Source: Bispira polyomma (Eukaryota). Taken from it: DNA of 64,000 bases. A program made the translations under genes and the position numbers. Under the pieces are notes generated by a model, which searched no databases, was not told where the DNA came from, and saw nothing but the letters and a program-made list of their open reading frames with translations. Below are positions 5,793 to 59,657 of the stretch, one piece after another. The stretch lies in contig OZ287752.1 in NCBI GenBank assembly GCA_965649765.1, positions 51,088,001-51,152,000 of the forward strand, in the 5' to 3' direction. Each line of letters begins with the position of its first letter. Position 1 is the stretch's first letter.

Positions 5793-8700
5793 ATGGAGGA
5801 AGAAAGAATTGAAGGTGAGTTCATATCATTACTATTGGTACAGGTAGTTTAGTACAGTATGAGTTAAAAGTGTTGTGGTAGTACTATGTACTATGTATTG
5901 TAATACTAATAAACAAAAAAAATCTAAATAATTTTAATCCTAAACAAGTAAAAAGCCGAATTTCCTGAAGGCCAGATATTTTATTTTAAATTTTTTTTTA
6001 AAAGAAATATTGCTCAGATTAAAGTCTAAAGTCAAGTCTCAAATTTAAGACAAACTGATTATAAAATCTACTATTTCAGTCAAAGGCTCAAATAAAGTCT
6101 TTAAGTAAAGTCTCAAATTGAAAACAAAGCTGAGACCAACATCTACAGTTTTAGTCAAAGACTCAGATCAAAGTAAAGTCTCAAATTTGAGATAAAGCTA
6201 AGGCCAAAATCAACTGTTTTAGTCAAGGGTTCAGATCAAAGTCTTAACTTAAAGTCTCAAATTTAAGACAAAGCTGAGGCCAAAATTTACTGTTTTAGTA
6301 ATAAAATTAGATAAAGTCTTAAAATAAAGTCTTAAATTGAAGACAATTTTTAGAATGTGTCATTTGTGCAGAGTTCCAGGCGGCCTTCAAACTGTTTGAC
6401 AATGATGGCCGTGGGTATATCACTGTTGACCAGCTCCAGAGTGTGATGGCGTCAATGGGAAAGGTCCCTACCGGTGGGGAGCTGAAACATATGGCCCTTT
6501 GTATGCATAGAGAGGGTGAGTCCATCATCCGGATATCATATCAGTAGGAAATAGTAATAAATGTACTAACTACCATCAGGTATTCTTGGGACCATGTGGT
6601 ATAGACAGGGTTTCATGAAGGACTTGTTCACAGCCAATCTTGTAAACTGATGCAATTAGTATAATAAATATACTAATTACCATCAGGTATTCGTGAGACC
6701 ATATGGTATCCAAAGACATCCACAGGGTTTTATCAAGAAATTTTCATGGTTGACGACCAATCTTGTGAACTGGTGTAATTGGTGTAATAAATATACTAAT
6801 TACCACCAGGTATTCTTGAGACCATATGGTATCAAGGGACATCCACATGGTTTCATCATGGACTTTCTTTCATGGTCCCAAAAAAATCTTATAATTGTAG
6901 TTGTATTTAAAATATTTAGGTGTAATTATAACTGAGAAAAATCTATTTTAAACACTCACAGTGTTAAAAGGGGAACACTTATTACTGTCAGATAGCTTTA
7001 AATCGGGACCTTTAATTAGAACATAGTATAAAAGGCTTAACCTGAGGAAAAGACTGCACTTTGTATTACATATAAAGGTTCAATAAATATTTTTTGTTTA
7101 AGTTGTTTTAAGTCTACACCTCCGTCATTGTAATATTTCCAATCCCATTTATCTGAATTTCCCTGTGTTCATTTAAGGCAATGGTGAGATTGACTTTCCA
7201 ACCTTTGTGTCAATGATGACTGAAAAAATGAGGGAAACTGATGAAGATGTTGAGATCAAGGAAGCATTTACAGGTAAAATTCAGATGCACTAATGACTTA
7301 CTAACAGCCCTCTCCAACTGTTAAACAGGATTTTTGTCAAGAGATTTTCAATAAATACCTAGTCTCCATTTTTATAATTTTATTTTTTAACTGTGATATA
7401 GAAGTGTATTCTATAACTTAATTGCATCATATAAGAAACTGCTGTCAAAACGAACCCTTGGAATTATGAAAAGAAGGTACATAACATGGAACTCTTTAAG
7501 TAATAAGAGCAATTAATTTTTGTCGCATTCAAATTTATATAAATATTATAACATGTCTTTGGTAACTAGTTTTGTACCAAATGTACCAACAAACTGTTCT
7601 TACATGAGTTGATCACTCTACAAAAAATACACAAATAATTATAATGTATTACAATATTCGTATTCACATTTATCTACCTTTATCTTGTATTCAAAATACC
7701 AATTAAGTTTTTTTAACTGCCCCAGTACAGCCAACCACCAGCAGTAACTGTCATTCCTCTAACTGAAAGCTTAGAAGGCTGAGGCTTGAGGGTGAACTTT
7801 TATCAACATCCCTCAATGTTCTTTAGCCTGCCACTGGTGATAAGATGCAATCATGTTGCTATTCTTGTGTTGTGTATTACTTTGTGAGCCATACCCTTTA
7901 TTTTATTTAGGAAGACGTTAAAACCTTCTGAAGCTTGAATATGGTTAACTTTTCTCATAAGTTGACTCATTCAAATGAACTATTTCTGACAATATGTATT
8001 GAGAATTGTGCCATTTCTAGATTTGTTATGGGCTGAGGCATGTTCCTTAAAATGCTATAGGATCCAATGATGGCGAACGACCAGTTGGTCATATGTCAGT
8101 AACTAGTTACCCGAGACAGGGTACGAACCCAGGTCCTCTGTGTTTCTATGTGAGAGTGTTTAGCCACTTGGTCATTGTGGCAAATTATTGCTGGTCATAC
8201 AGAAAGTGTGTTTGTGTATTTCCCCCCAGTTTTTGATGAGGATGGTGATGGTTACATCAGTGTGTCTGAACTACAGAGTGTGATGAAGTTCATAGGGGAG
8301 ACACTGACAGATGATGAAGTTAGGGCCATGTTGTACGAGGCAGACATCAATGGTGATGGACAGATAAGTTATGACGGTAAGTCAACTTGGTATATATACG
8401 TTTATCTAAAGCATGTTTCAAGGGAATTCATAGAGTTTAATATAAAATAACAAGAAGGGCACTTATGTGGAGTGTGGAGTGGTGGCAGACAAATTAACGC
8501 CTGTATACCAATCGGCACACCTACCTTGCAAAGGATTTGCGAATATTGATTTTAACAATGAACTAAACACAAACAATTAAATCAATGATTCTATATTTAT
8601 GTTTTAATAACCAAAAATCTGTTTGAAACAGCTGTTCTTACAAGGATATATTCATTCTATTTAATCTGAGTGTGCGTCTTTTGGTAGCATTTGTGTTAAA

Positions 8701-9089
8701 TTGCTACCACTACCTCCGTTAAGGCGCCACCGTACCAAAAAACGAAAAATTAATTCCTATATTGGCCCTCTTGCTTACAACCAATCCATGAAGGCCTTAC
8801 ATATTATTTCTTAGAATGAAAAGAGTATCGGGTTGTGCCTGATAAAAAGGCAGCAAGTAAATATAAGTAGCGAGTAGGAGGGTGTTATATGGCAATTAGG
8901 TACACACTTCCTGTCACAGTATTAATTGTCAACAATGCAAAAGTCTCAGTTATATTGTGAAATTCTCAGGATCATTTCTCCATATATACATCTGTAGATT
9001 TTCAGCATCTAAACGAAGACAGAACTAATTTCATTGATTTATGTTTGTGCCTTTTAGAATTCCTTGGTATGATGATGCAGCGCAAGTAA
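5793..9089 (+). CDS. Calmodulin-like EF-hand protein G1 (146 aa, 5 coding exons)
   Basis: Exons 5793-5814, 6372-6515, 7178-7273, 8230-8376, 9058-9089; all introns GT-AG, phase 1. Translation: [146 protein letters not shown]. In-frame TAA at 5778 precedes the ATG; TATAAA at ~5723; AATAAA at ~9323. Confidence 0.92.
6010..6345. repeat. Tandem repeat, ~65-73 bp unit, ~5 copies, in G1 intron 1
   Basis: Recurring aaagtctcaaatttaagacaaagctgag(a/g)ccaaaatctactgttttagtcaaag. Confidence 0.75.
6560..6890. repeat. Tandem repeat, ~105-120 bp unit, ~3 copies, in G1 intron 2
   Basis: tactaattaccatcaggtattc(t/g)tgagaccatatggtatc recurs at ~6565, ~6671 and ~6794. Confidence 0.75.
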
Positions 9090-11847: not shown

Positions 11848-12080
11848 ATTGTTCACTTTCATCTCCCTAAGAGACCATCCTAGCCATGCTGCCACACATA
11901 TGGCGCAAAGACTAACCCTACTAGCATTTAAGTACCCATTTTTACACCAGGGTATAGAGAGACAACTTGGTGTAAAGTACCTTGTCCAAGGGTACAATCA
12001 CCAGGCCAGCAGAGAGGATTAAACCTGGACTCCCTGATCCGTCAGATCAAAAGTCTAACAGTTTAACCATTAGACCACAT
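11848..12080 (-). mobile_element. tRNA-derived SINE (family A, second copy)
   Basis: Shares tgtaaagtaccttgtccaagggtaca...ccaggccag and gctgccaca...ggcgca...aagactaac with 2378-2608. Confidence 0.7.
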
Positions 12081-13785: not shown

Positions 13786-13965
13786 GATATCAGAGGTTGG
13801 ATGTAACTCTGTTTTTTGACCATATATGTACAAGTGTTTGGTGACATATAAAATTTGTAAACTAAAATAAATGGATATCAGAGATTGAATGTAACTCTTG
13901 TTTTTTTTACCACATATATATACACAAGTGTTTGGTGACACATAAAATTTGTAAACTAAAATATG
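13786..13965. repeat. Two-copy ~88-bp tandem duplication ending at the putative G2 ATG/donor
   Basis: gatatcagag...atgtaactct...caagtgtttggtgaca(t/c)ataaaatttgtaaactaaaata occurs twice. Confidence 0.75.
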
Positions 13966-16900
13966 GTAAGGCATGCTTTGTTTTCTACTGTATAAGTTGT
14001 ATGTTATTTCGTTTCTATATGTCTTCGTTTCAATTGTTTCTATATGACAATTGTTAAATAAATAAATTTTGTATTCAGTGTTTTGCTATCACATCTATGT
14101 AGTTTACTGATACTAGATATAACTGATCCAGTTTTGTTAACATGTCGATTACATAATCTTTGCACTCTGAATTTTCTAACTGAAATGATATTCAATCCTA
14201 TTTGCCAACCATGAAGATTGTGTGTTTGGCCGCCTCCGTTGGTTTGTTAACATGATTAAGGGGCAAATATACCTGTCCGATTTTGTTTCCACATCCGTTA
14301 TCAGACGTAGGTTTTTTTGTTTGTTAGCCGGATTACAATGCTGAACTGATTTATAAGAAATTTGGTACCGATGGGGCATGGGCAATATATGGTGGCCCTC
14401 TGTAAATGGGTCCTATCCCTAGTGCCAGACTAAAGAGGCGAATATACCTGGCCGATTCTGCTTCAGAATCCGAATCCAACGTCTGTTTCTGTCATCTGAA
14501 AACAATTGAAATATAATGAAATAAAGAAGTAGCCTACACTTGGCCGATGGCACCTCCGAATCGAGAGGGGAACTTTTTCGGATGACGGACGGAAATGTGA
14601 TGTAAATTTGGGTGATGGAAATAGACGTCGAATGACGGATTCGGAAGTAAAATCGACTAGGTATATTCGCCCCTTTAAACAACCTTGAGGACTGTAATGA
14701 ATGGTCATCGCCAAACCCCTCTTTTTCTCTTCAGTTATCAGAATACCAGTTGCATGTGCCTTTACTTAGGGGGCAGTCAGAAAAGTTTAATTAGTACTCT
14801 GAATAAGAAATAATGGTATATTATGCGTGATGACTGGTGCTTTCAGTCATTACGCATTATGATTGGTTTCACAGATTGACTGTAACATATGTATATATAT
14901 ATATATATGCACTGGGTAGGGATATTTTAATATATTATGATCAGTTGTGTCATTGTTGTAGGGTGACCAACAACTTACAGACGAACAGATTGAAGGTAAG
15001 TTTCGTAGAATCAGGGCTGGTATTCACAAATATTGTTACTCTTAAAGTTTTGTATCAAGAAATTTGATTGGTTGGGCAAAATGTATATTTCAATATGATT
15101 GGCTGAAACTAAGGAAATTCTCTCTCTAAGAATGACAGTCTAAGACTGTTTGTAATTATAGCCCCTGGTCTACAAAGACACATTTGTCAGAATAAATTTG
15201 AAAAGCCTAAAAGTATTAACTATGGCTGATAGAATTATATTTGAAAGCCTAACTTTGTATGTGAATACAATATTTATAGTCTTGTTGAGAAGGTTTACAC
15301 ATAAACTTAGACATACTGTAAGGTTATTCTGTGTATTCATTTCGTTAAAATCTATACTCTATAAGGTCCCTTTTCACATAGACGAATTGGCTTGGCGACA
15401 ACACGTGAAATTAAATATTTTGCTATGGCCAAGCTTTTCCCCCAAAAATATTGTTTTTTTTAATGGTTTATACTGTCGGAAACCATGTTTGAACTATAAT
15501 TTAATTTCTCCATCTGATTTTGCAGTTGATTGTTGATTATCAGACCTTTTTTCAGAACGACACTAGAATATTATAAGTCAAATGTTGTTTACAAATACTG
15601 TTCAGACCAGTTTACTGTTGTATTTAAGTTATTATTTTTTTTGGTATATCTATTGTGCACAGTCCCAAGCAGTGACACTGAAATTTGATCTTACTCTTAA
15701 CACACCAATAAACTTACTCACATTACTCAATTAGACCCACAATACAAACCAAGTAAGACGTACAGGAATAGAAAGTAGTACACAAACAGAAATAAACCAA
15801 CGTCTACAATATGCTACTTAAAATTTATGAAATAATTTGACAAATTCCCATATAATTGAATTATTGGTAGGTACCACACATTGAAATTGATCTTTATATT
15901 ATCAGTATGTCAGGGAATTATTAAATTTGTCAGCTAAAAATAATTTGTTTTTATCATTGTGGGTATATGCATTATTGGTCCCATATGTAAGAACTAAGAA
16001 CTATAACAAATAAATACCACAGTACATCTGCATATAACCATTGAAAATAGATGTTACAGTAAGTATGCATAATCAGTAAATACGTGAACTTACTGATTTA
16101 TCCAGTAAAAAATCGTATTTACTTAAATTAGGTCTCCATTATTTCACATGTTTACTGGTTGTCATTTCAGTAAACATTTGTAATATGAAAATTTTATTTG
16201 TTTAATTAAATGTTGAAATTAATTTGTTAAATTTAGATTAAAAGATAAATATCAAGATTTGGTAATTTCAGTGTTTCTCATGCATATGATGTACGTGTAG
16301 TATTTTTGGTGGTTTGTGTTCTACCAGTTATTAATGTATTTTTTAGGTCACTTTAAAGCACACTACATCATATGTATTTTGTACAGTTCTGTCTATTTTC
16401 ACAAGTGTAGTCATTTATTTTGGATTTCCCTGTTGGTTTCCCTATAGTACATAAATTATGCAGTGAAATTTCAAAACAAAAATGGGTATTACTGGATATC
16501 TAGTATATAATATTTATCTTTAAGGTTAAAGTTATGACAACTTCTTTATTAAATTCCTAATAATCATGATGACAAATGTAGTAGCTAAAAATACATAATG
16601 AACTTACCATAATAGCCATTTATACATGAACATATTTTCTGCAATAATCTAATTAATTAATGGTATTATTTATTATCTGAGTTGAATATACCACATTACA
16701 TGTAATGTAAAAGAAAATGTCATTGAAATTAACAAATCTATTTCAAAAGTCATTTTTAAAAGTCAAATTTTGAAAAAAATTGTAACATTATTAATGGTGT
16801 GATAAATAAAGATGGACTCATTAATAACTTGTAAAATCACCACCATCATATAATGATACATCATATGGATACAAACCACTTAATGTAACTAGTTAATCAT

Positions 16901-19900
16901 CACTTGAAGAAAAAGAAGAAAATTCAGTAAATACGTGAACTTACTGGAGTTAAATAGCAGTAAATTTACTGAAATTTTTAGGGATTACGCATATTTACTG
17001 ACCAAATCAGTAAGTCTGCGTATTTACTGAAATGTTTAGTAAGAACAAATATTTACTGCTTCACATATTTACTGTAACATATACATTAATGTACATATAC
17101 CAAGATGTTTCTTAAAATGACCAAGATGAATTGTAAAATACGTCACCTAGAAAACATAAGTGTCAATAAAAAGGTTATGTTATTTATACCAACCATTTCT
17201 TATACAGAGCTCAAAGAGGCCTTCTCCCTGTTTGACAAAGACGGTGATGGAACCATCACCACCAAAGAGCTGGGTACAGTGATGAGATCACTTGGTCAGA
17301 ATCCCACAGAACAGGAGCTAGAAGACATGGTGACTGAAGTAGATGTTGATGGTAAGCAGGTTCTTGGTTTTTGGCCTTTGTTTGACCTCTGGTAAGGTCA
17401 CTTCTTCAGAACCACAATTAAAGGACATGGCGGCTGAAGTGGATGTTGATAATAAGCAGGTTCATTGTTGTTAAGATTAGTTTGACCTCTGATAAGGTCA
17501 CTTGGTTGGAACCAGTTAAAAGACATTGTCACTGAATTCGATGTCAATAGTAAAATTCTTAACCCCTTTGACCTCTGATAAGTTCAGTTCGTCAGAACCG
17601 CTGTTAGAAGACATGGTGGTTGAAGTGAATGTTGATGGTAAACAAATTTTTTTTATTATAACCTTTGTTAAACCTTTGTTTGGCCCTGTGGTGATGTCGT
17701 TTGCCTAGTAGATAATTTATAATCACAGCAGATGAAAAACTATTGAACAATAATTCAAGTTTTCACATATTATGTTAATTACCAAGTTTGTCAACGTTTG
17801 GTAATTCAACATAATTGTGTAAGACAAGTTATAACTAAATGCATATACATGTAAATCTAAGGAATAGTTGCAGAATACACAAAAATATTCAGGTCTACTC
17901 TTTGACATGTGCCATTATGCTGAGAAAATAAAAGCACAAACCTATTTTACATGGCTTTAGTGAGCTCAATAAATATCATTAGTATGGAGATGAGAATCAG
18001 TGTAAAGAAGAGATTGTGTAAAGGTTTGTGGTCCTCAGGATCAAAGGCCTGTAAGGGTGGAGTTTTGATAGTCCTTTGCCAACAAAGAGATGAATTGATT
18101 GAATATATATGACTATGTCAACGTGAAAGATATCATTGAAAGGTAGACAATAAATGCAAGCAGGAAAAATGATTGATAATGGTAATATGTAAATTTGTTA
18201 ATGTACAAGAGAACACCTTTAAGCATATCAATATAATGGGCCGACCCATAATAAATACCATTAATAAGGCTGATATATGGCCAACACAAGAGCTTTTTTG
18301 TTTTAATCATTTTTTTGTGGGTTTGTTTTACATTTTATCCATGCTTTAAATTAATTGTGCTGGCTTATAATATACATTACTTTATATTACAGAAGCCCAT
18401 TTAGGACATGGTAGGAAAAAAAATTGGACAATTTATATATTGCTAAATCGCCGGGGCGATTTACAAACCGCCTGGGCAATTTACAAATCACCCGGGCAAT
18501 TTACAAATATATGTATACTGCTAAATTCCCTGGGCGGTTTCTAAATCGCCCGGGCGATTTAGCAGTATATACATATTTTGTAAATTGCTCGGCCGGTTTG
18601 TAAATTGCCTGGGTGGTTTGTAAATTGCCCAGGCACTTTGTAAATCACCCAAGCGATTTAGCAATATATAAATTGTTTAGATTTTTTTCTACCATGTCCT
18701 AAATGGGCTTCCGTATTATATCATCATATATTCAGGAATATTTATAAACTAAGATGAAAACACAAGATGTGGATTGAAATGGCCAGTTTATTCAACTCAC
18801 AAAAAATGTATAAATTAAACCAAGCATACAATATCTTTACAATTTGATTACATAACACTAATGACTTATATATACATTATTTATTTACAGAAATGTGGTG
18901 AGGACAATCTATTATATATGGTATTATTAGATCTAGACTGAAAACAAATGGTACAAATGAATACATTAAGCCTAGGCTTCTTTTCAGCATGTTTTTCTCG
19001 ACCGACGTCTGTAAACATCAGCCGATGTGGGCCGATTTTATCGGTCATTATTTAATATTAACAACGGCTTCCTTACAACATATTTCCCTCAGATCAGACG
19101 TCATCAGACGTCATCCCCAATCATATTTTATCATTCAGGGAGCGATACAATCGGTAGGTCTGTCCTATTTTTTAATAAAAATGAAGAAAAAAACATATTG
19201 GATGAAAGAAAGTGCTACATTGGCTGATGGCCAGATGTTTTTGTTCCCTGACTGATAAATTCTGATGGGTATACAGACGTCTACCCACGTCTGATCTGAT
19301 CTGCTGCAAATATGTTGAATGGAAGCACTTCGTAGTATTAAGTCATGACTGATAATATCGGCCAACGTCGTCCGAGAAAAACATGCTGAAAGGAAGCATA
19401 GGCCCAGAATACCAAACAATATTATTTTTGACAATAGTTCTTTGTAGAAGAATTAACTTCAATATCAATGCGCAAATAATGTCATCATCTGTTGAATATT
19501 CTTTTAACTCCTCCCATGTGAGTAACACTGTTTAATTTATTATTCCAGTGGTATTTGTCACCTTTGCTGTATTAGTCATTCATGGATTGGCTGGGAGCAA
19601 TCAACCCGTTCAAACTGAGAGGTGTCTAATGAGATTAATATTTGTTGCATATCAACGTTACTATACTTAACACTGTGAGACTGTGTCTTTTTTAAAGACA
19701 ACTCTTGTTTAAATATTTATCACTGTAATTTGACTGCATACAAAATTGGGACGGTTTATATTATATTTTTATTCAGGATTTTTTTTTCAATGTAAATATA
19801 TAAACATCACTTTATATTCTATTAATGAACAATTAAACAGGAAACAAAGGTTTCTCCTTTGCCACTAGAAAACCCCACACACATTATTACCTCCACAAGG

Positions 19901-21812
19901 TGGTTATGTTTAGTGTTCGTTTGTTGGTTAGTAGGATTATGGAAAGCTACTGAAATTATTTTAAACGCACTTGCTAGAGGGCTAGGGCATGGGCCAAGAT
20001 AGAAATAATAAAATTTTAGTGGACCGCGTACCTCTGCCAATGGGCCACAGGTCTAAAAAATGAAAAACATTTCGGGATCCGCACTTTTACCCGGCCTCAT
20101 TATAAAAATATAGTGGATGTTTTTTAGGCCCATGCACACATTTTTTTAGGGGCAAGATGTGAACACCTGTTGGGGTATGCTGTAGTAGGACAAAGGACAT
20201 ATGCAACATGAACTAATACCAGTTTTGTTTTGTTCTTTAAAAGGAAACAATGAAATCGATTTTGATGAGTTTCTCGTCATGATGGCGAAGAAAATCCATT
20301 CCTTAAGTGGCGAAGAGGAAATCAAGGAAGCATTTAAAGGTATGCTCACTTTGTAAAGTAAACTTTAATACTCATCATAAAATACATCCAGTTTATTTAA
20401 AGAATAACGCTTGACAAACCTTGTCTTGGTGCTTTTACATCTCCAATTGCGGTGAAATTTCCATGTATCCCTGGTTTGGAATGGGTTATTGGATTATAAA
20501 TCAATGTACCTTTTGATCTTTTAATAAAAGTGTCCCCTTTTTAAAAGAATGCCCTAGGGGACATCGGTGGCACAGTGCTAACACACTCGGTTCTTACCTC
20601 TATCGTCCCAAGAACGGGGCATTAAGTAGAAAAATTGCAGTGACTGAAGATGGTCACTGGTTCCAGTGTAGAATCTTGACCAACTAGAAAACATTGGTTT
20701 CCTTCTGCACTGAAACTGCCCATCGTCAATGTGTTAAAAGCGACGTTTAAACCAAGTAATTTTAGATCAAAAGAATGCCTTAATAATATTATTTTATAAT
20801 ATTCTAATACTGTTGTTTTAACTGATATACACTTTACATAATGGTGTGACATCACAGGTAAAAAAAAACATATTATAAGCTGACACATAACATCATATAG
20901 ATCATGCATTGCAAACTTTGCAAGCTCCATCACATGTTTTGTAGTGTTTGATCCGGAGAATAAGGGCTATATTGAATCCAATGCTCTGCGTCTTATTATG
21001 ATGACAAGAGGAGAGATAATGTCACAGGAAGAGGCAGATGAAATGATCCAAGAGGCAGACCAAGATGGAGATGGACATATAGACTATTATGGTATGGATT
21101 TGTCTACTTTATCTGTCTGGCTTTTTACAAATATTTTTTGGGTGATAGGTTATTCTGGTATGGATCTATCAGCTTTAACTCGCTGGCTTATTACAGATAT
21201 CATTTACTGATAGAGACTATGCCAGTATGGATCGCTCGGCTTTATCTGTTGAGCTGTCAATTTGATATATCTGGGGCCTTATTCACAAAAGCTCTTAGTT
21301 TTAACTATTTTTAAGTCTTAAGCTTAACAATTAAGCCTGAAATATTTAATACTGTCTTCTGTTTGTCCTAGTGTTAATAGCAAAGGTAACACTAACCAAA
21401 TATCTTCTCTTACTGTCACTTTTCGGCCAAAATCAAAAATCCAAATATTAAGACTAATTTAAGACTAAGACCTTTTGTGAATACGGCCTCAGATTTTTTT
21501 TACATATTTTCTTTGGAGGGGCGGTGGGGTCCATTTAGTTCTGTTCATACAATACCTTTGTGTTTCCTACAAACATGCACTTTTAGAATACAAAACAAGC
21601 AATGTGCATCACTTGGTGATAACAAAAATCATTTTTTCTTAGTACAGTACACTTTTAGGGTGTACAGCATGCTCTCATTATCCCATTAGTACATACATAT
21701 TTTTATATATAAGTGACAACAATATAAGGTTTCTCAGTGATAACAGATATATTGCTTTTTCCTTGTTTTTTTTTCAGAATTTGCTGCTATGATTATTAAT
21801 GACAACATATGA
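13963..21812 (+). CDS. Calmodulin-like EF-hand protein G2 (152 aa, 6 coding exons), closest to canonical calmodulin in the N-lobe
   Basis: ATG-only exon most likely 13963-13965 (ATG|gtaagg; alternative 14813-14815 ATG|gtatat), then 14962-14995, 17208-17351, 20244-20339, 20945-21091, 21778-21812. Translation: [152 protein letters not shown]. Confidence 0.9.
14431..14677. mobile_element. MITE with ~50-bp TIRs and TAA/TTA flanks (Harbinger-like)
   Basis: taaagaggcgaatatacctggccgattctgcttcagaatccg matches the reverse complement of cggattcggaagtaaaatcgactaggtatattcgccccttta. A further partial TIR lies at ~14257. Confidence 0.75.
15012..15167. mobile_element. Short MITE, GGGCTGGTATTCACAAA TIR family
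   Basis: cagggctggtattcacaaa ... tttgtaattatagcccctg, starting 17 bp into G2 intron 2. Confidence 0.6.
16051..17080. mobile_element. ~1-kb non-autonomous DNA transposon with repeated subterminal CAGTAAAT motifs
   Basis: atgttacagtaagtatgcataatcagtaaatacgtgaacttactg ... tatttactgcttcacatatttactgtaacat form inverted ends. Confidence 0.6.
17307..17645 (+). repeat. Tandem ~85-100 bp repeats (4 copies) of the G2 exon-3 3' end plus splice donor
   Basis: Unit cagaac...aagacatgg(t/c)g.ctgaagt.gatgttgat(g)gtaagcagg...tttgacctctg.taaggtcactt recurs at ~17307, ~17407, ~17508 and ~17593. Confidence 0.8.
18390..18713. mobile_element. Hairpin MITE with TA target duplication (Tc1/mariner-type) and internal 21-bp palindromic repeats
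   Basis: ta|cagaagcccatttaggacatggtag ... ctaccatgtcctaaatgggcttccg|ta. Internal AAATCGCCCGGGCGATTT-like units. Confidence 0.85.
18970..19403. mobile_element. MITE with long (~150 bp) imperfect TIRs
   Basis: gcctaggcttcttttcagcatgtttttctcg ... cgagaaaaacatgctgaaaggaagcataggc. Inner arms ggccgattttatcggtcat / atgactgataatatcggcc. Confidence 0.8.
20470..20755 (+). mobile_element. tRNA-SINE (family B) with upstream flank also present at ~22070-22370
   Basis: ggtggcacagtgctaacacactcg head; gatggtcactgg...cagtgtagaatcttgaccaacta...ggtttcc...gcactgaaactgcc body. Confidence 0.65.
21079..21250 (+). repeat. Tandem ~66-bp repeats (3 copies) spanning the G2 exon-5 donor
   Basis: atag...tat..tggtatggat.t.tc.(a/g)cttta.ct...tggctt.ttaca.atat at 21079, 21145 and ~21210. 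Confidence 0.7.
21271..21492. mobile_element. MITE, GGGCC(G/T)TATTCACAAAA TIR family
   Basis: ctggggccttattcacaaaag ... ccttttgtgaatacggcctcag. Confidence 0.75.
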
Positions 21813-25484: not shown

Positions 25485-26545
25485 AAAGAGTACAATGAGT
25501 GGGCCTATTTAACAGAGCAATGAGAGGTCCTATCTAACAGTGCCATGAGATGGTCTATCTAACAGTGGCATGAGAGGGTCTATCTAACAGTGGCACGAGA
25601 TGGTCTATCTAACAGTGTCATGAGGGGGCCTATCTAACAGTGCAATGAGATGGTCTATCTAACAGTGCCATGAGGGGGCCTATCTAACAGTACCATCAGT
25701 GGGCCTATCTAACAGTGCAATGAGAGAACCTATCTAACAGTACCATCAGTGGGCCTATGTAACAGTGCAATGAGAGAACCTATCTAACAGTACCATCAGT
25801 GGGCCTATCTAACAGTGCAATGAGAAAACCTATCTAACAGTACCATCAGTGGGCCTATCTAACAGAGCAAGGAGAGGTCCTATCTAACAGTGCCATGAGT
25901 CGGCCTATCTAACAGTGCAATGAGAAAACCTATCTAACAGTACCATCAGTGGGCCTATCTAACAGAGCAATGAGAGGTCCTATCTAACAGTGCCATGAGT
26001 GGGCCTATCTAACAGCGCAATGAGAGGTCCTATCTAACAGTGCCATGAGTGGGCCTATCTAAAAGTGCAATGATAGGTCTTATCTAACAGTGCCATGAGT
26101 GGGCCTATCGAACAGTGCCATCAGTGGGCCTATCCAACAGTGTCATGAGTGGGCCTATCCAACAGTGCCATCAGTGGGCCTATCTAACAGTGCCATGAGA
26201 GGGGCTAACAGTGCCATGCGGAGGCCTAACAATATCATGAGGGGGCCTATCTAATAGTGCCATTAGGGGGCCTATGTAACAGTCCCATGATAGGGCCTAT
26301 CTTACAGTGCCATTAGTGGGCCTATCTAACAGTGCCATGAGAGGGACTATCTAACAGTGGCACGAGATGTTCTATCTAACAGTGTCATGAGGGGGCCTGT
26401 CTAACAGTGCCATGAGGGGGCCTATCTAACAGTGCCATGAGAGGGGCTAACAGTGCCATAAGGAGGCCTAACAATGGCATGAGGGGGCTTCTCTAATAGT
26501 GCCATTAGGGGGCCTATCTAATAATGCCATGAGGGGGCCCATCTT
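25485..26545. repeat. Minisatellite, 25-bp unit (GGGCCTATCTAACAGTGCCATGAGT), ~42 copies
   Basis: Directly visible tandem array with variant units. Confidence 0.95.
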
Positions 26546-42484: not shown

Positions 42485-43590
42485 GCTGATGATGCACAGT
42501 TGTACATCCATCTATCTTCAGATTACCCCTCTGCTTTGATAGTCTGAAAGGGTGTCTTAATGATGTTCAGGAATGCTTTCCATAACAATTAAACCTAAAT
42601 CCTGATAGGACAGGAGTTCAGTCGATTTGGCTCCAAACCCCAACAAGAAATATTAGCTCAATATTTCACCAGTGAAAGCTTCTTAAAATAGGAGTAATGT
42701 GAGTATACTTGGTAGTTTTGTTACTAGGTTGTGTCTGGCTAGACTGTGTGTGACTTGGCGGTCTTGTATGCATTGCAACTTTAGATATAACCTGAAAAGG
42801 GTTCGAAAAGAGAATAGCAGTTTTAGAGGCGACTATTAACCAAGGCATTTGCAGCCAAGGTAGCAGTCCATGGAGTCATGTCAGATAACGTGGAATCCTT
42901 CTATGATCTGTCAGCTGAAAAATACAGGCCTAGCACACTATCTGGACATGGTTAGCAAATGATAAATTAGAGTCAAACATCACCCTAAGGTTTTACAGGA
43001 TGGAACATTTTGCCTACCTAGTTAACTTAGACTTAATTATCATCAAGTTTATCACACCGCAACTTAAAGCTAAACACAATAATTTCAGTCTTGTCTTGAT
43101 TTAATTTCAGCCTATTTGCAAACAACCATTTTTATATAAAAACATCACAGAGTATCATTAGATTATCAAGGATAGCAGCAGCATTCTTTTAAGAGATATG
43201 GACGAACAATTGTGTATCATCTGCATACAAATGATAATTGATATGGTTGTATTTACCATTGATTTTACAAAGAGGAGTGGTGTATGTGGAGAAAAAGATA
43301 TGTCCCAATGCAGACCATTGTTGAGTAACATACTGTAGTCTCTATAAATAGAACAGCGTATAACCTGAACCCAATCTGACAAGTATGAAGTGAACCACTC
43401 CCAAACAGTGTCACTATGCCCAAAAGAGGATGATAAACTCTCAAATACAGTGCTATGATCAATTGTATCGAAGGCAGCACAGAGATCAAACAAAACTAAA
43501 GCAGTAGGTTCACTCTTGGGCAGATAAATATGTATCTCATTTTTGATTAACAAAAGGGCTGTTTCAGTTGAATGACCCTGCTTATGTGTT
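42485..43590. mobile_element. LINE (CR1/L2-group) RT fragments in opposite orientations
   Basis: Plus strand 42485-42660 gives ADDAQLYIHL and LNPDRT. Minus strand 42666-43590 gives LVLFDLCAAFDTIDH, YADDTQL and HITPILRSFHW. Confidence 0.75.
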
Positions 43591-48104: not shown

Positions 48105-48535
48105 CAGCCTCTCACCCAAGAGGGGCTGGCAGGCCAAATTTGCCCAGCCAGCCAAAAGAAAGATGCACTATAAAAAGCAAACAAGTTTGTTACACATTTG
48201 GGTTGTTTATTCACACATAAAAACACATGTTAGTAACTACTATCTCTCAAGTTGAGGTTACCTTAATAATGCACCTGCTAAATATGAAGTTACTCCTTAA
48301 TCCTCCCACTTTAAGGTGGCCTTAACCTAAGCATGTTCTTTTACATCTCACACTTAAGGTTGCCTAAAGCTGGGTTAAGGTATTCTTAAAGTGATAGCAC
48401 CCTTGCATGTTGTTAGTTAAGGTGACCTTTCCCCTGAAGGGCCTCTACAGTCTATTTGTTATGCTAAACCTAGTTTATTTACACTACTATATAATTTGAT
48501 ATAATGTATGATATAACTTGCCAAACCCAATGTAG

Positions 48536-49537
48536 TTATTTGTAGGTGTGTGCTGTGGTTAAGTGTGTGTGAAAGGCAGCTGCTACTAGTCCTGCTGTTT
48601 TTGGAGTTTTCACCAAGTAACGCCAGATGGCATCTGAACGCCAGCCACCATGTACCTTAATGTGTTGGAGGTCAACGTGATGGTCAAAAGCCTATGAAGC
48701 AGCCGACCTTCTAAGAGCATGGAAGCCATATTCAGCTGGGATGAGGCCTACTTGCTGCACTAGGGCAGAGAAAACTTTACGTACGTGGAAGGCTGTAACC
48801 ACCACGTGTGCACCTAAGTGTGTGTATTGAAAAAGGGGGGTTTTGTTTGAACAGGGGTTGGGGGGGCAAATATCATGCAGAGCCTGTACTGGGCATAATG
48901 GGGAACCAGGGAGCCTGGGTACCTGAACCACTTGCGCTTGCCCTGACACCTGCATGTTCTGTGCACACTTAGTTATTATGTGTGCCCCGGGGGCCGCCCA
49001 TACTACGTCCCGTGGTGTGGGAAACCTTGAGGGGTGATAAAGAGTCGCTTTAGACGGAACCAAGGTTGCAAGCCTAAAGAAACCAAAGAACCCTAATAGT
49101 ATGATAGCTTTGTGTACCTTAGCCCCTGGAAACTGGGATACCAGTGATATTATCTGCATAAGTTTGTCTATAGACAGAACTCCTTTTACTTTTTATCTGA
49201 GGGGTGCATTATGAGACACCGCCTTGATCATGAGATGAACTTTTCTATGCTTTAGCACCTGCAAGGGGAAGTCGTACATCTGGAAGAAGTGGTTAAGTAC
49301 AGCTAAGTAGCCTTGTAGTGTCTGGGATCTGAGTCCCTGCTGGGCCAGGAACTCGAGGAATAGTAAGACTGGATTAAGTTCGTGGGGGACCTGAATTTTA
49401 AGGTGAGACAGAAAGGCTATGTACAGCCTGAATTTAGATTGGTATGCCATGGAGGTCTGAGGCCTAAAACCAGTAGAGATGCGTGTGTGGACATCTTGCA
49501 GTAAACGTCTGGAAAGGCTGTTACCTACAAGAATCAA
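48536..49537 (-). pseudogene. Tyrosine recombinase (single frame, two in-frame stops)
   Basis: GFRPQTSMAYQSKFRLY, FFGFFRLA, CPVQAL, HALRRSAAS*, HGGWRSDAIWRYL. Stops at 49195-49193 and 48694-48692. Confidence 0.85.
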
Positions 49538-50680
49538 ATGTCATAATTAGGTTTTGACCATTGAATGTCCACAGGGCACCAATTACATGTCTTCAGGTAT
49601 AGAACCTCGGCCTTATTTGTGCTGTAAAAATGTTGCCAACTTGACAATATATCTGCATATGTATTGTTACTTCCACGAACGTGTTCCACTGAGATGTTTA
49701 TGTTAAACTTGGCCTGAATTAACCATAATGTCCTGGCACAAGCATTCAGAAAGACATCTTTACCTTTTGACTTATTAAGTATATGGACCACAGCCATATT
49801 GTCGCAATGGACACAAACGCTTGTATCCCTCCAACAATCACCTCATAGTCTAGTCTGAAGGCAATCAATATGTTACACATCTCGAAATGTACAATACCTA
49901 GGTGTTGTTTATACTCTTGGGGAATATCCACGCTATATATTTGCCCTTCCCAATACGCCCCTAAATTTTGCAGTGAAGCATCTACAAACAATTGTTTTCT
50001 AGGGAAGTTAATTTGGTGAATGGCTGTAACCCCATTGTACGCTTGTAAAAATACACAAAACCAATTAATGTCTTTGTGAAATGAATCATTTAAGGGGACC
50101 TTAGTATGAGGGGGAGTGCCTCTTAACACCCCCAAAATCCTGTTAACGAACAGCCTGGTAGGCTTAACACAACGGTGTATGTAGATCAATTTGCCTAGCA
50201 ATTGTTGTAACTCTCTGTGTGTGGCCCAGGACTTGTGAGTCCATTGTTTACATAATTGGCTGATTTCGCTAAGTTTACCCGCTGGTATCGTCAGGACCCC
50301 CATGCGAGCATTTACATTAATCCCCAAACATGTAACACTTTCTGAGGGGGAATTTTTCGTAATTAATTGGGAGGCCTAATTCTGTGATTAAATTCTTGAG
50401 GGAGTTAAACCCAGCACTACCCTTTCTGGGAGGCGCAACGCCCAAAAAGTCGTCTAAATGCACGCACGTCCAGTGGCCAATCCGACGCAACTAGTGAGTG
50501 ACGCAGTCTGACGTCATCTAACACACGCTGGCGCCCGAGGAGAGCCCAAAGGGCACACTTACGTCCACATAGTAATCACCCTCCCAACTTATCCCCAAGG
50601 CCCCATAGTCATATGGATCACTCCTCGAATTACGATATGCTCGTTTTAGGTCGATTTTATATATAAGGGCTGTAGGGCCT
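49534..50680 (-). pseudogene. Truncated, frameshifted RT/RNase H
   Basis: Homologous to 33525-34700 (LLGKLIYIHRCVKPTRLFVNRIL vs [23 protein letters not shown]); contains stops and frameshifts. Confidence 0.85.
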
Positions 50681-52664: not shown

Positions 52665-52706
<42 letters not shown>

Positions 52707-53091
52707 ATATATATATAAACCTTTCTCAGATATAAGACCTTCAACCTATGAAAGGATTTTGCAACAGATTTAAGTACAAACGAAGACTACTATCTACCTA
52801 TTTATGGAAAAATATATTTTATCTGAAACATTTAGTTACCAGTTTTCAGTTTTTAGCCAACCATAAAAAGTAATTATAATTTGCTTTCACACAGCCCTTG
52901 AAAGCTCAGATCGATAAAAACTATAATAATTACTTCACAGATATTTACAAGAAAATCAAAGATACTTTATGAAAACATGCAGAAATATTGTGCTACTTCC
53001 AAACAAGCCACAGTTGATATAATAATTAACAAAAGCCTCAGGGACCCTGCTGATTGACAAGTCTGTAGAATCTCTGCCTCTGAGGTGGGTA

Positions 53092-56000
53092 TCACATGGA
53101 TAACATGATGGTGACAAATTCTGAAAAACAAATATAAAACATGACTAGAATAGAAATAAACAATAAAATAATCAAAGCAATAGTTGTTTTAAATAAATAG
53201 AATGATGGAAACTACTACTGGTGTGGATGTAAGTATATTTGTATTGTATTGTATAAAGGATCATTTGTAACACGCCTTATTGTTGTGAGGCATCTTCTAA
53301 AGCTCAAAAACAAAATCAAAAATCTATTTGTCTGAATCACTTGTTACATATTTTTACTATGGCTTAGTATGTCACAGTGAAAACAATGACAAACGGGAAA
53401 TATGTTTTCAGCCCACCCTGGGACATTTTTTTTTTTTTTTTTTAAATTTGGATATTTAACATCCACTCTAGTACCTGTTTAGGTTATATTGGGACGGGTA
53501 GTTGGAAACACTGGAGGAAACACTGCATACAGTTGATCAAGGTTCTGCACTGAAACCAGCGGCCCACAGTAAGGAACTACCACCTTTCCCACATAGGCAT
53601 CGACGGGATTCAAACTCACGCCGCCCAGAGGTGAGAGACCAGTGATTGTGAAGCGCAATGCTTGCTAACCACTAGGCCACCGCGGCCCCCCCCAGCCTGG
53701 GACAAACAGGTACCGGAAGATACATAGTGGGTCGGATAACCACTTAAAAGAGTCCTATCCTTAAATGGTCATCCTCAACTCCCTGTCTTAAGCTAGGGGA
53801 TGATAATTACTGGTGCTGTTTGGCTGTATATGTGCAGTTCACAAAATGTTTAATTACAGCTTTGAATATCAGATGAAAGTATATAAATATGAATAAATAT
53901 AAATTTGAATACAATGCAATGTTATACTGAAAAGTATGTCAAGTACATTATATATTTACTGGCTTACTGGCCTTTAATACATACAATAAAGAGGGCTTGC
54001 ATCTATAAAGACTAAACCATTTTAATTTTGATTTATTCACTTAACGACCATCATACAAATTATGAAATAATTACACATAAGATATATTTCACTGAAAACA
54101 AGATTAATCTTTGTAAAGTTTAATAAGTAATATCTGTAACAACAACATCAATTATTGACCACTAAAATTTAAAGAACATAATTAACTTGATTTCAGCAGA
54201 AGATCTATTTAAGCCATATGACAATGAGTATAAGCATTACTAACTCAGTGCCTTGTATGTGAACATCATGGTACTTTAGCTAAAAGTAAAGTCACAGCTC
54301 CCAAAACTAATTAGTGTAGATATACTGATCTTAATACACAGCCAATTGCCATAATCAGTAGGCAATAGTGTGGTCACATCTTGGTCAGGAATATTATTTC
54401 TCCAAATGGCTAATATGGTGTTACCTGGAATCGAAGCAGAGACCTTCTAATCACCAAACCAACTAAGTAACTACTACACCACAGGAGACCACCAAATCAA
54501 TGCATCTCATTAAGTCACGGTCCATCCAGTACGTCACCAATACTCACCTTCATAATTGATCACCCCAGTTCCCTCTGAATCTGCATCTTTGATCATTTCA
54601 TCTACCTCCTCAGTATTTAGCATTTCCCCCTGTGACATCATTATTTGACGAAGATCTTGTGCCTTAATGGTCCCATGTCCTTCTTTGTCAAAGACTAAAT
54701 AAAAGGTGCATCTCACATAATACTCAATAGATAAATTTTTATTTGTGTATAAAGCAAAAGAATAGTTTAAGTTTGAGAATACAAATTTAAATAATAATCC
54801 CATTTAAGTGAACTGCAAAAAAACCCCTAAGGCATTGGATATTATGCTCAGTTAAATATGTCGTGATGCAACAAAATTGTGGGTATTTACATAACCTATG
54901 TAAATATTTAAAAGTAAATATGTGTAATCAGTGATTTGGCCACTGATTATGGGTGTTAGTAATCACAGAAATATTTAAAAAATATAAGTAATCACCGAAA
55001 TTTCAGTGTCAAAATTGCACAATTTTAGTTCAATGTAGAGTCAGTGTCAATTGCAAAATAATGACTGAAAAAGGTTTTAACAGTTATATGAAGAAGCTTT
55101 TATGGTGGATTGTGTGGTTTAGGTTAAGCTTGGTTATATAGACTTGTAAAATACATATTCTGTAAACATAGTAAACAAATTACAAAATCCTCTTACATCT
55201 AAATGCCTGTCTGATTTGATCTTCTTGGTCACTGCCTTTTAATTTACTACGTGCCACAATCACAAATTTCTCGAAGTCAAGTCCACCGTCATCTGAAAAT
55301 ACAAACACAGCTTAGCCATGGTTATGTGCATTTGTTTTAAAGCCCTAATAATGTTCCAGATAAAATACTGCATAAGTGAAAATTGTCACTTGGAATTAAT
55401 TTTAGCTATTTTAGTAAATGAGTTAGGATAGTGAAAATAGATTCCAGTGCAAACTTTGAAACTGGTATTTGATAGTTTAACTAAAAATAGTCAATGCTGT
55501 AAATCACTTTAATATTTGAATATTGTGGATTAGTAAAAAAAAAAGCTTACAGCTAAAATTGCCACTTCTACAGTAATTTACAAGTAATCTATCTTGGGCA
55601 TGATAAAATAGTTCAATATACATGAGAAAGCCATTTACAATAAAGTTTTAAAAAAAATTTGTAAATTAGATAGCACCGCCAAGCCGCTTCAGTGTCAGAA
55701 ATTGATCAAACATTACGGGATCTACCCCTGTACCAAGATCTCACCAATGATTGATTGGTGCATACTCTATCCCTCTATCAAAATTAAAATAAATCAGTTG
55801 AGTAGTCCTATGGAGTAATCTTGGTGAAAAACAAACAAAGCAAACAACAAGCACCGGTAACAACATAACAATAATACTCAATGTTTTAATATCTTGGCCC
55901 ACTAATATTTTTCGTTTCATTCGAGCTAGCTTTATGCCTAATAAAATTTCTTGGCCCAATGAAATTGTTCGTTTCATTTGAGCTAGCTTTATGCCTAATA

Positions 56001-57731
56001 ACATTTCTTGTTTTAGTCTATACATTTTTTTTTTGTTAATTATTATTTATATTTGTTTAGACCCAACTAACCATCAGTCTCTGTACTGTCTACAATAGTC
56101 TTTAGCTCAGCCTCAGTTGGACAGATACCTAGTGCCCTCAAGGCTGAGCCCAGGTCCTGAATGTCCATAACACCTCCCTTCTCATAGGTGTTGAAAACTT
56201 CTTTGAAATCTACAAAACAAATATATGTAATATTTCTGCAGTGCCTACATATTCTTAGCTGCTATATTATATAATAAGCACTGGGACATTATTTGTTAGA
56301 TTAGATCTCATTTAATAATCTAACAACAAAGAAAGTAAGGCTTGCATTGATCATAACATATAACATAAAACACAATCGTAAGGCACATTAACCCGCATTA
56401 CATTAGTCATAGAGTATAAGATAAAAAAAATACATGGTACATTTAATAGCATTGCATTGATCATATAGTATAAGAATGATGCATATTGAGCAGCAGTGCA
56501 TTGATGATATGGCATGGGATATAAAGGAAATCATAGAATATATTTAATAGCATTGCAATGATCATGTGGTATAAGATAAATATGGTATATTTAACATCAT
56601 TGCATTGATCTTGTGGTATGACATTAAACAATCATAAGGGAAATTTAACAGCATTGCATCGATCATATGGTTTGAGGTAAGAAAAAATCATAGAATATCA
56701 GTAATACCATTGTATTGATAATATGGTATAAGATAAGAACAACCATATGATATATTGTTAAGGATAAGTGTAAGAACAATATTCTAAGAGTGTATTGTGG
56801 CTAAATATTTATTTGGCATCTGTTTAGAAACCAAACCCATTTACTTGTGGCTTGTGGGGTGAAATTGTTTTCTACCTTTTTCCATATTGTTATGTAAACA
56901 GTCGTTTCTCAGCATTCCATAAAATGCACTAATCTTAACAGAGATAAAAATGGACAGTTTTGTTAAGTGCCGATTTCAAATATTTGTAAACCAGTGACAT
57001 ATTTATTTAAAAATCAGAACTTCCAACTGTCACAAACAAACAATATCTAACCGACTATATTCTATGATTAGGTTAATATTAGCAACAACGATATAGACGT
57101 GTATGCCGTGTTGACAAAACACTAAATGGTACACATAAATAGTCTATTTACCTGCCACTTGGTCATCATCTATTGAGAGTTCCTAAAATTACAGAAAAGT
57201 TGATTAGTACACCCCCTTATCCATACTATTACGCGGACAGTTGAGGTTTCCAAGGGCAGACCAAAGGAATTCTTAATATATAGATTTCATAGAATTCTAA
57301 ACAAATGTAAAGCTCGAACACGCTTTAATGAAGGGCAACACACAATGTTAAACAGTTTTGTTTTGTCAGTGAAAAACTATATAAGCCAGTAATATGAAAT
57401 GAACTGAATGTACAGATTACTTTTAACGGGGTTAATCTCATTGCAGAATATAACGACCATTAGAAGTCTCATCTAGTATATTATAGTTTTCTACATTTAA
57501 TATTGTACATTTATATACCATAGTGACACACATATCACCAATGGAACACAAAGTGCCTTATAAGCCCAGATCGTATGGACTGGTTGCAATGTCAAGCTTA
57601 AATTTTTAGTATCATTTACTGTGTGAAGTAGTTATATAACATTTTAACACTGTTTTTATTACTGTAATGTTCTGTTGTCATTTGTTCAGGTGACACTTAA
57701 ATAGAATATATTATCTCTTTCTTTCTCTCTG

Positions 57732-57769
<38 letters not shown>

Positions 57770-59657
57770 CATGGGTGGCATTAAGTCTTCTTACAGCATT
57801 TGCATATTGACATATTTTCTAAGCAGACATATTTTAAGCAGTTGAACAGTAGCCTTAATCCTGGCAAAAAAATATGACAAGGCTTCTTCATCCCAAATAA
57901 AATGTTTACATATTTTGATATATTTTCCAGTTGGATGGGACTTGCTTGACACATAAAACACCAAAAAGACTCGGTAAATCTATCTCTTTGTTTAATAATT
58001 TTGAATTTTTTTAAAAAAATATTTATATGTCACTGTAATGAATCAAATAGAACCATTTTTATAATGTTTCTTTGTGGAGTTTTCATATTAAGTTTAACTT
58101 TGTTTTAGTCAATTGAAATAAAATAATGAGTTTACATAAAGATCTTAACAAGTATAATCTTATCTTGTATATAAGGGAACTTAATTTCCAAGTAAGCTAG
58201 AACACATCCTTACACCATTTAATGTATTCAGCGATATAAAATACAGGTGGCCAATAAATGTTGACAACCGGAAATAATGACTACATCTTTTTTATGAACT
58301 GTACTCAAATAGTCCATCCTAACTTTGAGACTTAACTAAATGTGTAGAGATTACATATATAAAAGTTGCAAGTACAGATAAGGGGACTGATTATTAAACA
58401 TAATTATAGATTTAAGAGCAGTTATCTTTAACATTACCATTTTTACTAATATATTACTACAAATACAAGAGGAATGTGTTTTCGGCCTTATTTGTGAGTT
58501 GAGACTAAGGTATTAAATATGTCAAAAAAGACAGTTCCCATTCTAAAGGGTTATTGATAACTTATACACAAAGGTATCCTTTACTAGGTAGTATTATATA
58601 TACACTGATTGATTCATACTATGTCGCTTTTAACAATACCATGTACTCTTAACGTTCCACTTAATGAAAAAAAATTTTCTTCAATAAATGAAAAAAGTCC
58701 CAAACTAAACAAATCACGAATGTATTTCTTTGATGACTTCACTACTTTGTGTTATCATACTGGTAAAACTTAAATGGTTTATTGTCATGTATCTTATCTA
58801 TAGCTAGTGTCATTCTGGCAGATTTATTGTGAAGTAAGTCATAAAATAATTGGGGTTTAATTTGATGTAGTTCTTTTTAGCCTCTGGCTCATACGTGGCT
58901 ATTTAGTGTATCTATAATAGATAACATCAATAGCCCATACCTCCAACAGATTAAAACTAGTCAAAGCTTTAAAGAAGAGAACTTATTAGAAGTCCAGTTT
59001 ATATGTGAATTACATCTTTAAGGAGGGACAGGAAATAAAGCTAGCATAGGAAAAGTAGGCCAAAATTCATAAATTATTGTCAAGTAATATCACACTGTTG
59101 ATACAAAATTAGTTTAACTTTATTTTACAACGAATAGTTTTATTTATACGTATGTTTCTTTAACGTTTAACAAAGTTTCTTATTTATATTTTATTTTAGA
59201 AATTTAATTAAAAATTGTTCACTGAAAAGATTTATGCATATTTAAGATATACTAAAATAAGCATACAATATGTTACAGGCTTTGAGTTCTGAAAAATAAG
59301 CTACTATGTCATTAATCAACAAGAACTGTCATACAAATAAAACAAATAATTTAAGTTAAACTTCAAAGCATAGTTCATAAGCTTATTTTTACACCTTGGT
59401 TACCATGGGACAAACCATAGAATGAATGAAATTGCTTTATTCCAATTCCACAAAAAAATGATAAAAAAACTTAATAAGTACATAAAAACACATATTTGTT
59501 ATCATTCTTACAATTTTAAAATTATAGGACATGATAATTATCATTGCAGTTTTATTATCACTGTAAAATAAAACCTAATTACCCTTTGGGAAGAACATAT
59601 CTGATCACTAATAAAAAGCCAATTATAGGCAAATACTGGACATGCAACACTTACCAT
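53092..59657 (-). CDS. Divergent calmodulin-like / light-chain-like EF-hand protein G4 (147 aa, 6 coding exons)
   Basis: Exons 59657-59655 (ATG|gtaagt), 57182-57152, 56209-56072, 55292-55197, 54694-54548, 53120-53092. Translation: MELSIDDDQVADFKEVFNTYEKGGVMDIQDLGSALRALGICPTEAELKTIVDSTETDDDGGLDFEKFVIVARSKLKGSDQEDQIRQAFRFFDKEGHGTIKAQDLRQIMMSQGEMLNTEEVDEMIKDADSEGTGVINYEEFVTIMLSM*. Confidence 0.92.
53455..53690 (-). mobile_element. tRNA-derived SINE (family B), well preserved
   Basis: Minus strand ggggccgcggtggcctagtggttagc (A box) ... gagtttgaatccc (B box), followed by the ggtttcagtgcagaaccttgatcaact...gtttcctccagt body. Confidence 0.75.
56335..56745. repeat. Degenerate ~50-bp tandem repeat in G4 intron 2
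   Basis: Recurring gcattgcattgatcatatggtataagataa. Confidence 0.65.

Follow-up and report, generated by a model that had tools for sequence, protein, structure and literature searches.

A tandem array of calmodulin-derived genes with mixed predicted Ca2+-binding loops in Bispira polyomma

Four calmodulin-like genes lying near one another in the genome of Bispira polyomma, each with its own combination of intact and degenerate EF-hand loops, raise the question of whether they form a self-contained set of Ca2+ sensors or belong to something larger. The genes, here called G1 to G4, are located in a 64,000-nucleotide stretch of contig OZ287752.1, referred to below as the window (C5:51,088,001-51,152,000 of a 1.035-Gb assembly, without N runs; window positions are counted from its first letter). 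An initial annotation had presented them as a four-gene cluster. Our analysis points to a larger unit: G1-G4 are very probably the most diverged members of a 12-gene, roughly 200-kb tandem array derived from calmodulin (CaM); the genome as a whole has about 40 genes of the CaM type. The locus is an ordinary though neat lineage-specific expansion of the calmodulin family.

We annotated the flanks of the window (C5:50.938-51.088 and 51.152-51.172 Mb) by the same logic as the window itself. The upstream flank contains eight more collinear CaM-type genes, U1 to U8, and no CaM-type gene is present downstream of the window (C5:51.152-51.172 Mb); the locus is therefore a 12-gene array. Its members follow one another in the order U1(-) U2(+) U3(+) U4(-) U5(+) U6(+) U7(+) U8(+) G1(+) G2(+) G3(-) G4(-) over about 200 kb (C5:50.95-51.15 Mb). 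The discrete cluster of the initial annotation thus dissolves into the distal end, or last third, of an array with near-canonical CaM at its centre. These near-canonical genes, U2-U5, have four canonical loops each and are 87-94% identical among themselves; U5 is 95% identical over the core to a library CaM (P0026). The diverged members number seven: U6, U7, U8, G1, G2, G3 and G4. The array is one of several CaM-type arrays on C5, where most of the approximately 40 CaM-type N-lobe exons of the genome are found. A genome search with the N-lobe exon of G2 gives at least 94 exon-level matches, including a tight series immediately upstream of the window. A fully canonical CaM is encoded on another chromosome, at C2:100.785 Mb (L006, C2:100785058-100788195). 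We found no published description of this array in the literature searched.

All genes from U2 to G4 display a common exon plan, in which a small exon is followed by exons of 144, 96/99, 147/150 and ~30 nt. An extra phase-1 intron between K/R90 and V91 is present in each of them, and in a copy at C5:8.43 Mb. The canonical CaM on C2 lacks this intron and has residues 60-139 (E3 and E4 parts) in one exon; U2-G4 therefore descend from one intron-bearing CaM duplicate. The intron is likewise missing from the abalone CaM genes (CaM A-D), which have five exons and no intron in the fourth (PMC6171432). In the copy at C5:75.9 Mb and in U1, an intron is placed further 3' than K/R90-V91. Intron position may define subfamilies among the roughly 40 CaM-type genes.

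The exon models of G1-G4 were set by coordinates, from stop-to-stop segments and junction sequences. All 15 EF-hand loops quoted in the initial annotation are present in the sequence: six-frame translation yields 7 of the 15 uninterrupted, and the eight that are split by introns are recovered on exon joining. Every exon border is AG/GT (GT-AG introns), each model has a single terminal stop, and the internal introns are all phase 1 and interrupt homologous codons in the four genes. With exon sizes of 144 nt (138 nt in G4), 96/99, 147/150 and ~30 nt, second exons of 10-13 residues and terminal exons of 9-11 residues, the models encode proteins of 146-152 aa. The description of four intact, highly diverged CaM-like genes therefore stands at the level of exon borders and reading frames. 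A tblastn search of the window with the four models revealed no fifth CaM-type gene, apart from the last exon of U8. This candidate terminal exon (630-652, plus strand; DFVKLMS and a stop, with D as the split codon) follows the best polypyrimidine/AG acceptor past exon E4 of U8 (C5:51087824-51087970, plus strand), the array member directly upstream of the window, and is placed by homology only.

The genes are oriented +,+,-,-. G1 is complete from its ATG and encodes 146 aa. Its first exon (5793-5814, plus strand) has the ATG with MEEERIE, is preceded by in-frame stops and ends in a phase-1 donor (G/GTGAGT). The N-lobe exon (6372-6515, 144 nt) holds loop 1 and the first third of loop 2, exon 3 (7178-7273, 96 nt) the rest of loop 2 (HREG/NGEIDFPT) with the central linker, and the C-lobe exon (8230-8376, 147 nt) both C-lobe loops, the last one split before E; the terminal exon (9058-9089) is conserved as EFLSMMMQRK-stop in an ENA contig (L032) discussed below. 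G2, also on the plus strand, has a candidate ATG-only first coding exon at 13963-13965 (ATG/GTAAGG), one of two upstream candidates, the other being at 9504. Its small exon (14962-14995, 34 nt, AG/GT borders), homologous to the ADQLTEEQIA exons of U3 and U4, is a securely predicted second exon. It is followed by the N-lobe exon (17208-17351; loop 1, then DVDG/ of loop 2), an AG/GT-bordered exon with /NNEIDFDE and the linker (20244-20339), the C-lobe exon (20945-21091; C-lobe loops, the last split before E) and a terminal exon ending in a stop (21778-21812). In the tblastn search, the last part of the N-lobe exon recurred in degenerate form inside G2's own intron.

On the minus strand, G3 has a candidate small exon at 38936-38975 (40 nt, AG/GT, phase 0 to 1, with an LTEEQ-like motif), 8.1 kb upstream of its N-lobe exon (30682-30825; loop 1, then DLN/ of loop 2). 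The exon with /ENGTIEYEE and the linker (30398-30496, 99 nt), the C-lobe exon (29367-29516, 150 nt; C-lobe loops, the last split before E) and the terminal exon (28935-28963; EFCKVLLSK-stop) complete the model. G4, on the same strand, has a candidate ATG-only first coding exon at 59655-59657 (AAAATG/GTAAGT), the only ATG with a 4/4 consensus donor in the 4.3 kb of 57183-61500. The interval 5793-59657 of the initial annotation corresponds to the ATG of G1 and this candidate ATG. The small exon of G4 (57152-57182; ELSIDDDQVA, 31 nt, phase 0 to 1, tttag/...G/gtaaat) matches the size of the 31-nt second exon of vertebrate CaM genes, and the canonical-type copies of the array encode the same count of ten second-exon residues at this position. 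Next come the N-lobe exon (56072-56209, 138 nt), ending in ETD/, and the exon with /DDGGLDFEK and the linker (55197-55292), whose donor leaves a T that produces F (not V) before FDKEG. The C-lobe exon (54548-54694) has the loops DKEGHGTIKAQD and DSEGTGVINYE/E, and the terminal exon (53092-53120) encodes EFVTIMLSM-stop.

To which EF-hand subfamily do these proteins belong? Pfam, PDB, library and ESM-Atlas searches were made with single exons as queries. Pfam EF-hand_7/EF-hand_1 models match 7 of the 8 lobe exons of G1-G4, and no EF-hand match was obtained for the N-lobe exon of G4. When compared with all solved structures, the N-lobe exon of G1 and the C-lobe exons of G4 (70 bits) and G1 match CaM best, and the top 60 matches of the G4 C-lobe search are all CaM. 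The N-lobe exon of G4 matches troponin C (E 1.6e-7) and CaM (1e-6) about equally, with a single regulatory light chain far down the list; the ESM-Atlas look-alikes of both G4 lobes are generic EF-hand, CaM or troponin C-like clusters. Membership of G1-G4 in other EF-hand subfamilies (troponin C, myosin essential or regulatory light chains, centrin), instead of descent from CaM, could draw on the small lead of troponin C for this one exon and on the nearest ESM-Atlas cluster being auto-named 'troponin C-like'. However, apart from the C-lobe matches, the exon plan and intron phases are common to all four genes and the neighbouring near-canonical CaM copies, the N-terminal extension of troponin C and centrin is absent, and the second exons are CaM-like in their 10-13 residues. 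We consider such an origin extremely improbable. A troponin C identity was also weighed for G4 by itself and rejected: troponin C comes marginally first for its N-lobe only, the second exon has 10 residues, and both the C-lobe and the gene structure point to CaM. None of G1-G4 qualifies on sequence as a myosin essential or regulatory light chain.

G1-G4 are instead CaM-like proteins in the sense of the CML/CALML families: they are CaM-sized, consist of two EF-hand pairs only, and have CaM as the nearest characterised relative (in the N-lobe of G4 through the PDB alignment only). Their descent from a CaM duplicate is displayed in exon sizes and phase-1 introns equal to those of the adjacent near-canonical copies, and in a single star with CaM. 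The statement of the initial annotation that none is a canonical calmodulin proved correct. A canonical CaM is expected to show at least about 85-90% identity to the 148/149-aa protein, and G1-G4 show 46-65% identity to the canonical-type copies U2-U5; four canonical 12-residue loops are found in G3 alone, against two in G1, three in G2 and none in G4.

Loops were scored by the usual ligand rules together with a PROSITE-style pattern; the initial annotation had required D1, D/N3, D/N/S5, G6 and E12. The scoring predicts live (+) and dead (-) loops as --++ in G1, ++-+ in G2, ++++ in G3 and ---- in G4, with at best one weak site in the latter. The first three patterns agree with those proposed before. 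The second loop of G2 is ambiguous: it scores positive under the PROSITE-style pattern, which accepts N at position 6, but breaks the G6 rule of the initial annotation itself. The fourth loop of G4, previously given as a possible site, satisfies neither the rule nor the pattern, with E at position 3 and T at position 5; G4 may therefore bind no Ca2+ at all, and its EF4 is at best a weak site. The first loop of G4 is indeed two residues shorter than usual, as is seen in alignments to troponin C and CaM and to the paralogues. By the same scoring, U6 is ++-+, U7 -+-+ and U8 ++--, so that the "combinatorial" pattern characterises the array as a whole. The methionines of the target-binding pocket follow another course: of the nine CaM positions G1 keeps 9, G2 7, G3 3 and G4 3, with mostly hydrophobic replacements, and in G1 all methionines are retained even in the Ca2+-dead N-lobe. 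The replacement of 6/9 methionines in G3 suggests altered targets.

These observations bear on the proposal that G1-G4 form a toolkit in its own right, in which four genes for graded Ca2+ sensors and Ca2+-insensitive light chains were retained together, are co-regulated and act in a single tissue programme (for example in the motors of cilia or sperm, or in biomineralisation). In its favour, G1-G4 are intact neighbours, no two of them have the same predicted set of live and dead loops, and the mollusc literature ties CaM and CaM-like proteins to the mantle and shell formation (PMC5040781). Yet the array has 12 genes with no boundary between U8 and G1, similar loop mixtures occur in U6-U8, the orientations are +,+,-,-, and DIRS-type elements lie between and within genes. 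Phylogeny provides no help for the proposal either. The maximum-likelihood tree is a star in which the canonical copies have near-zero branches and the diverged ones long terminal branches (G2 0.39, G3 0.75, G1 0.98, G4 1.13), and it lends no support to a G1-G4 clade: the four genes are solitary long branches, not one related set. We regard the toolkit as improbable.

Identity among G1-G4 is 32-47%. Across the genome, the C-lobe exons of G1, G3 and G4 have no paralogue closer than the canonical type (60-67% identity), and the N-lobe exon of G4 is unique, with no paralogue match at all. All four genes are thus old singletons, and G4 has diverged furthest, with 46-48% identity to the canonical type and 58-60% identity of its C-lobe to CaM. 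Recent gene conversion by canonical copies was considered for the N-lobe of G2, where the proportion of nonsynonymous differences (pN) is 0.11; the corresponding synonymous proportion (pS) of 0.50 speaks against conversion in the recent past.

Are these old copies constrained or decaying? A dN/dS near 1 had been named in advance as the mark of decaying duplicates. With U5 as the reference for pN/pS and for neutral walks, we obtained pS of 0.56-0.72, which is saturated, pN of 0.23-0.34 and dN/dS of 0.15-0.27 for G1-G4; this mark of decay is absent. Separated by lobe, pN is 0.32 (N) and 0.24 (C) in G1, 0.11 and 0.34 in G2, and 0.39 and 0.29 in G4: in all three, the higher value belongs to a lobe with dead loops. 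Neutral substitution-only walks that start at U5 and run to the identities observed remain stop-free in 6.6% of runs for G2, 3.9% for G3, 3.0% for G1 and 1.7% for G4, or jointly in ~1e-6, with indels and splice sites uncounted. For G1, a word search with the C-lobe exon led to an open reading frame on two short ENA metagenome contigs (P0002), the sole useful fragment. The orthologue on one of the ENA contigs (L032) comprises the C-lobe and terminal exons with the same splice sites, the introns being unalignable; both C-lobe loops are canonical, and the C-lobe exon displays dN 0.056, dS 1.85 and omega of about 0.03. G1 is thus conserved across species. By these comparisons, G1-G4 appear as old, single-copy genes under purifying selection.

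Other protein searches were less productive. Word-index searches returned nothing for the C-lobe exon of G4 or the N-lobe exon of G1, and no record matched exactly the open frame surrounding exon 4 of G4. An exhaustive protein search with the G4 C-lobe exon returned mostly long multi-CaM fusion models. Its best normal-sized match (P0019, 54% identity) was rejected as a G4 orthologue, being an odd protein with a duplicated C-lobe. The search also turned up numerous public proteins, 270-1500 aa long, in which CaM-lobe matches number 4-11 (library matches P0004-P0018); these are probably fused models of neighbouring tandem CaM genes.

G4 is the member for which a different fate is easiest to picture. 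One or more of G1-G4, and G4 above all, might be an unexpressed relic or recent pseudogene whose frame has stayed open by chance: G4 is the most diverged at 46-48% identity to the canonical type, its N-lobe exon has no Pfam EF-hand match, none of its loops passes the PROSITE-style test, no protein search yielded an orthologue, and its ATG exon is a candidate only. Against this, its five introns have all 10 splice dinucleotides intact (candidate ATG exon included), no stop or frameshift interrupts about 147 codons, and the 31-nt second exon is well formed. Its pN of 0.34 against U5 is half of the saturated pS of 0.72, only 1.7% of neutral walks to its divergence stay stop-free before indels and splice sites are counted, 8 of the 9 pocket positions remain hydrophobic, and its C-lobe retains 58-60% identity to CaM. 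A relic is in our view quite improbable.

Several points weigh against our preferred reading of G1-G4 as diverged, functional members of a calmodulin-derived array. The models are drawn from genomic DNA, and the ATG exons of G2-G4 and the second exon of G3 are candidates only. Ca2+ occupancy is predicted from loop residues, and non-canonical loops can bind Ca2+ or Mg2+ weakly. Protein searches revealed no orthologue of G2, G3, G4 or the N-lobe of G1; the constraint on G2-G4 is indirect, resting on saturated paralogue comparisons and on the integrity of the open reading frames, and is compatible with recent inactivation.

A calmodulin-derived array of this kind could have arisen as follows. An intron-bearing CaM copy would have been duplicated in tandem, with sub- or neo-functionalisation of the products. 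U2-U5 remained near-canonical, and U6-U8 and G1-G4 each set out on a solitary long branch. Individual EF loops would have lost their Ca2+ ligands, with the helix-loop-helix scaffold kept. G1 would then be a natural 'N-lobe-dead' half-sensor, with an apo N-lobe, a Ca2+-sensing C-lobe and all nine pocket methionines; G2 would be a three-site sensor that has lost site III, and G3 a sensor with four sites whose target surface has been remodelled. G4, with no canonical site, probably acts as a Ca2+-independent subunit resembling apo-CaM or a myosin light chain. A bolder version of this scenario treats the array as a set of natural 'lobe-knockout' calmodulins, kept for tens of millions of years because they compete with calmodulin for its IQ and channel targets, or partition them, either independently of Ca2+ or through one lobe specifically. 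We offer it tentatively, as an unlikely extension.

Broken, neighbouring open reading frames of a DIRS-like retroelement, with matches to RVT_3 (RNase H-like) and to tyrosine recombinases (Phage_integrase), occupy 32555-37474 on the minus strand; the element lies inside the putative 8-kb first intron of G3, on the same strand as the gene. At 25495-26544, in the convergent intergenic space of G2 and G3, a 25-bp minisatellite unit is repeated 42.6 times (78% matches). No Pfam match was obtained for open reading frames of 131-193 aa at 61404-61964, 43158-43553 and 48692-50327, all on the minus strand; the last interval holds a pair of frames situated in a DIRS region. Short tandem duplications overlap exon borders in three array genes, U7, U1 and G2. 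In U7 (L028:7195-7680), a unit of 85 bp, repeated 5.7 times, comprises the acceptor and the first ~55 nt of the N-lobe exon; in U1 (L016:494-1161), 124 bp is repeated 5.4 times and includes an exon piece of the '...AEIAEAxRVFDKENK...' type. G2 has two instances in the window: 100 bp x1.8 at 17324-17503, covering the end of the N-lobe exon and its donor, and 94 bp x2 at 13786-13963, which abuts the candidate ATG at 13963 and ends at its ATG/GT. Such duplications of exon borders could create alternative splice sites. Outside the array, about a dozen dispersed open frames of 62 aa match the CaM N-lobe exon at 48% with identical scores; they occur on many chromosomes (e.g. C1:99714057, C3:98824677, C4:77726574, C6:51845858) and may represent an EF-hand fragment that spread with a repeat or retrocopy family.

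How far does this locus resemble known calmodulin families? The likeness to canonical CaM extends to four EF-hands in about 147 aa, to CaM being the best solved-structure match for both lobes, to a 31-40-nt second exon preceded by an ATG-only first coding exon (a candidate in G2 and G4), and to the nine pocket methionines of G1. G1-G4 differ from it by their low identity to the canonical-type copies, by 0 to 4 degenerate loops per protein, and by the K/R90-V91 intron. Animal CaM-like proteins such as human CALML3-6, Drosophila Androcam and pearl-oyster CaLP are also CaM-sized, EF-hand-only duplicates of CaM, often with some inactive loops. CALML4 and Androcam serve as myosin light chains, and CaM-like proteins often have specialised partners. 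The difference is that the CaM-like genes described here share an array with near-canonical copies, and G1-G4 are likened to the animal proteins by family, not by orthology. Many plant CMLs are intronless. Plants parallel the present case in large tandem and segmental expansion and in graded sensors: barley has 5 CaM and 80 CML genes, and plant CaM/CML expansions yield members with 1-4 functional EF-hands (PMC9439640). The expansion described here is nevertheless independent, occurs in an animal lineage, and is intron-rich with a conserved exon plan. Molluscs have multiple CaM genes and CaM-like proteins, and bivalve genomes have high EF-hand counts (PMC6171432, PMC5040781); in its remaining features, the array is an expected lineage-specific EF-hand expansion of the kind already known there. 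G1-G4 differ from the pearl-oyster CaLP, cited in PMC5040781 and PMC6171432, by lacking a CaLP-type hydrophilic C-terminal tail.

Some parallels to individual members were made in the laboratory: the lobe-dead calmodulins CaM12, CaM34 and CaM1234 are used in ion-channel physiology. G1, with sites I and II dead and its methionines intact, is similar to CaM12, and G4, with no canonical site, to CaM1234, in predicted occupancy only; unlike the engineered proteins, G1 and G4 are natural genes with many further substitutions. If the lobe-knockout scenario were true, the array would be the in vivo counterpart of these constructs. The locus also carries a warning for annotation, as tandem CaM loci are easily fused into multi-CaM gene models. 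If the array is expressed, it would represent a compact natural experiment in the diversification of CaM duplicates, with near-canonical and seven progressively diverged copies side by side that vary in which Ca2+ sites are inactivated and in how the target pocket is altered. Within it, G1—with its dead N-lobe, intact methionine surface and conservation across species—could show the use of a half-sensing calmodulin in vivo.

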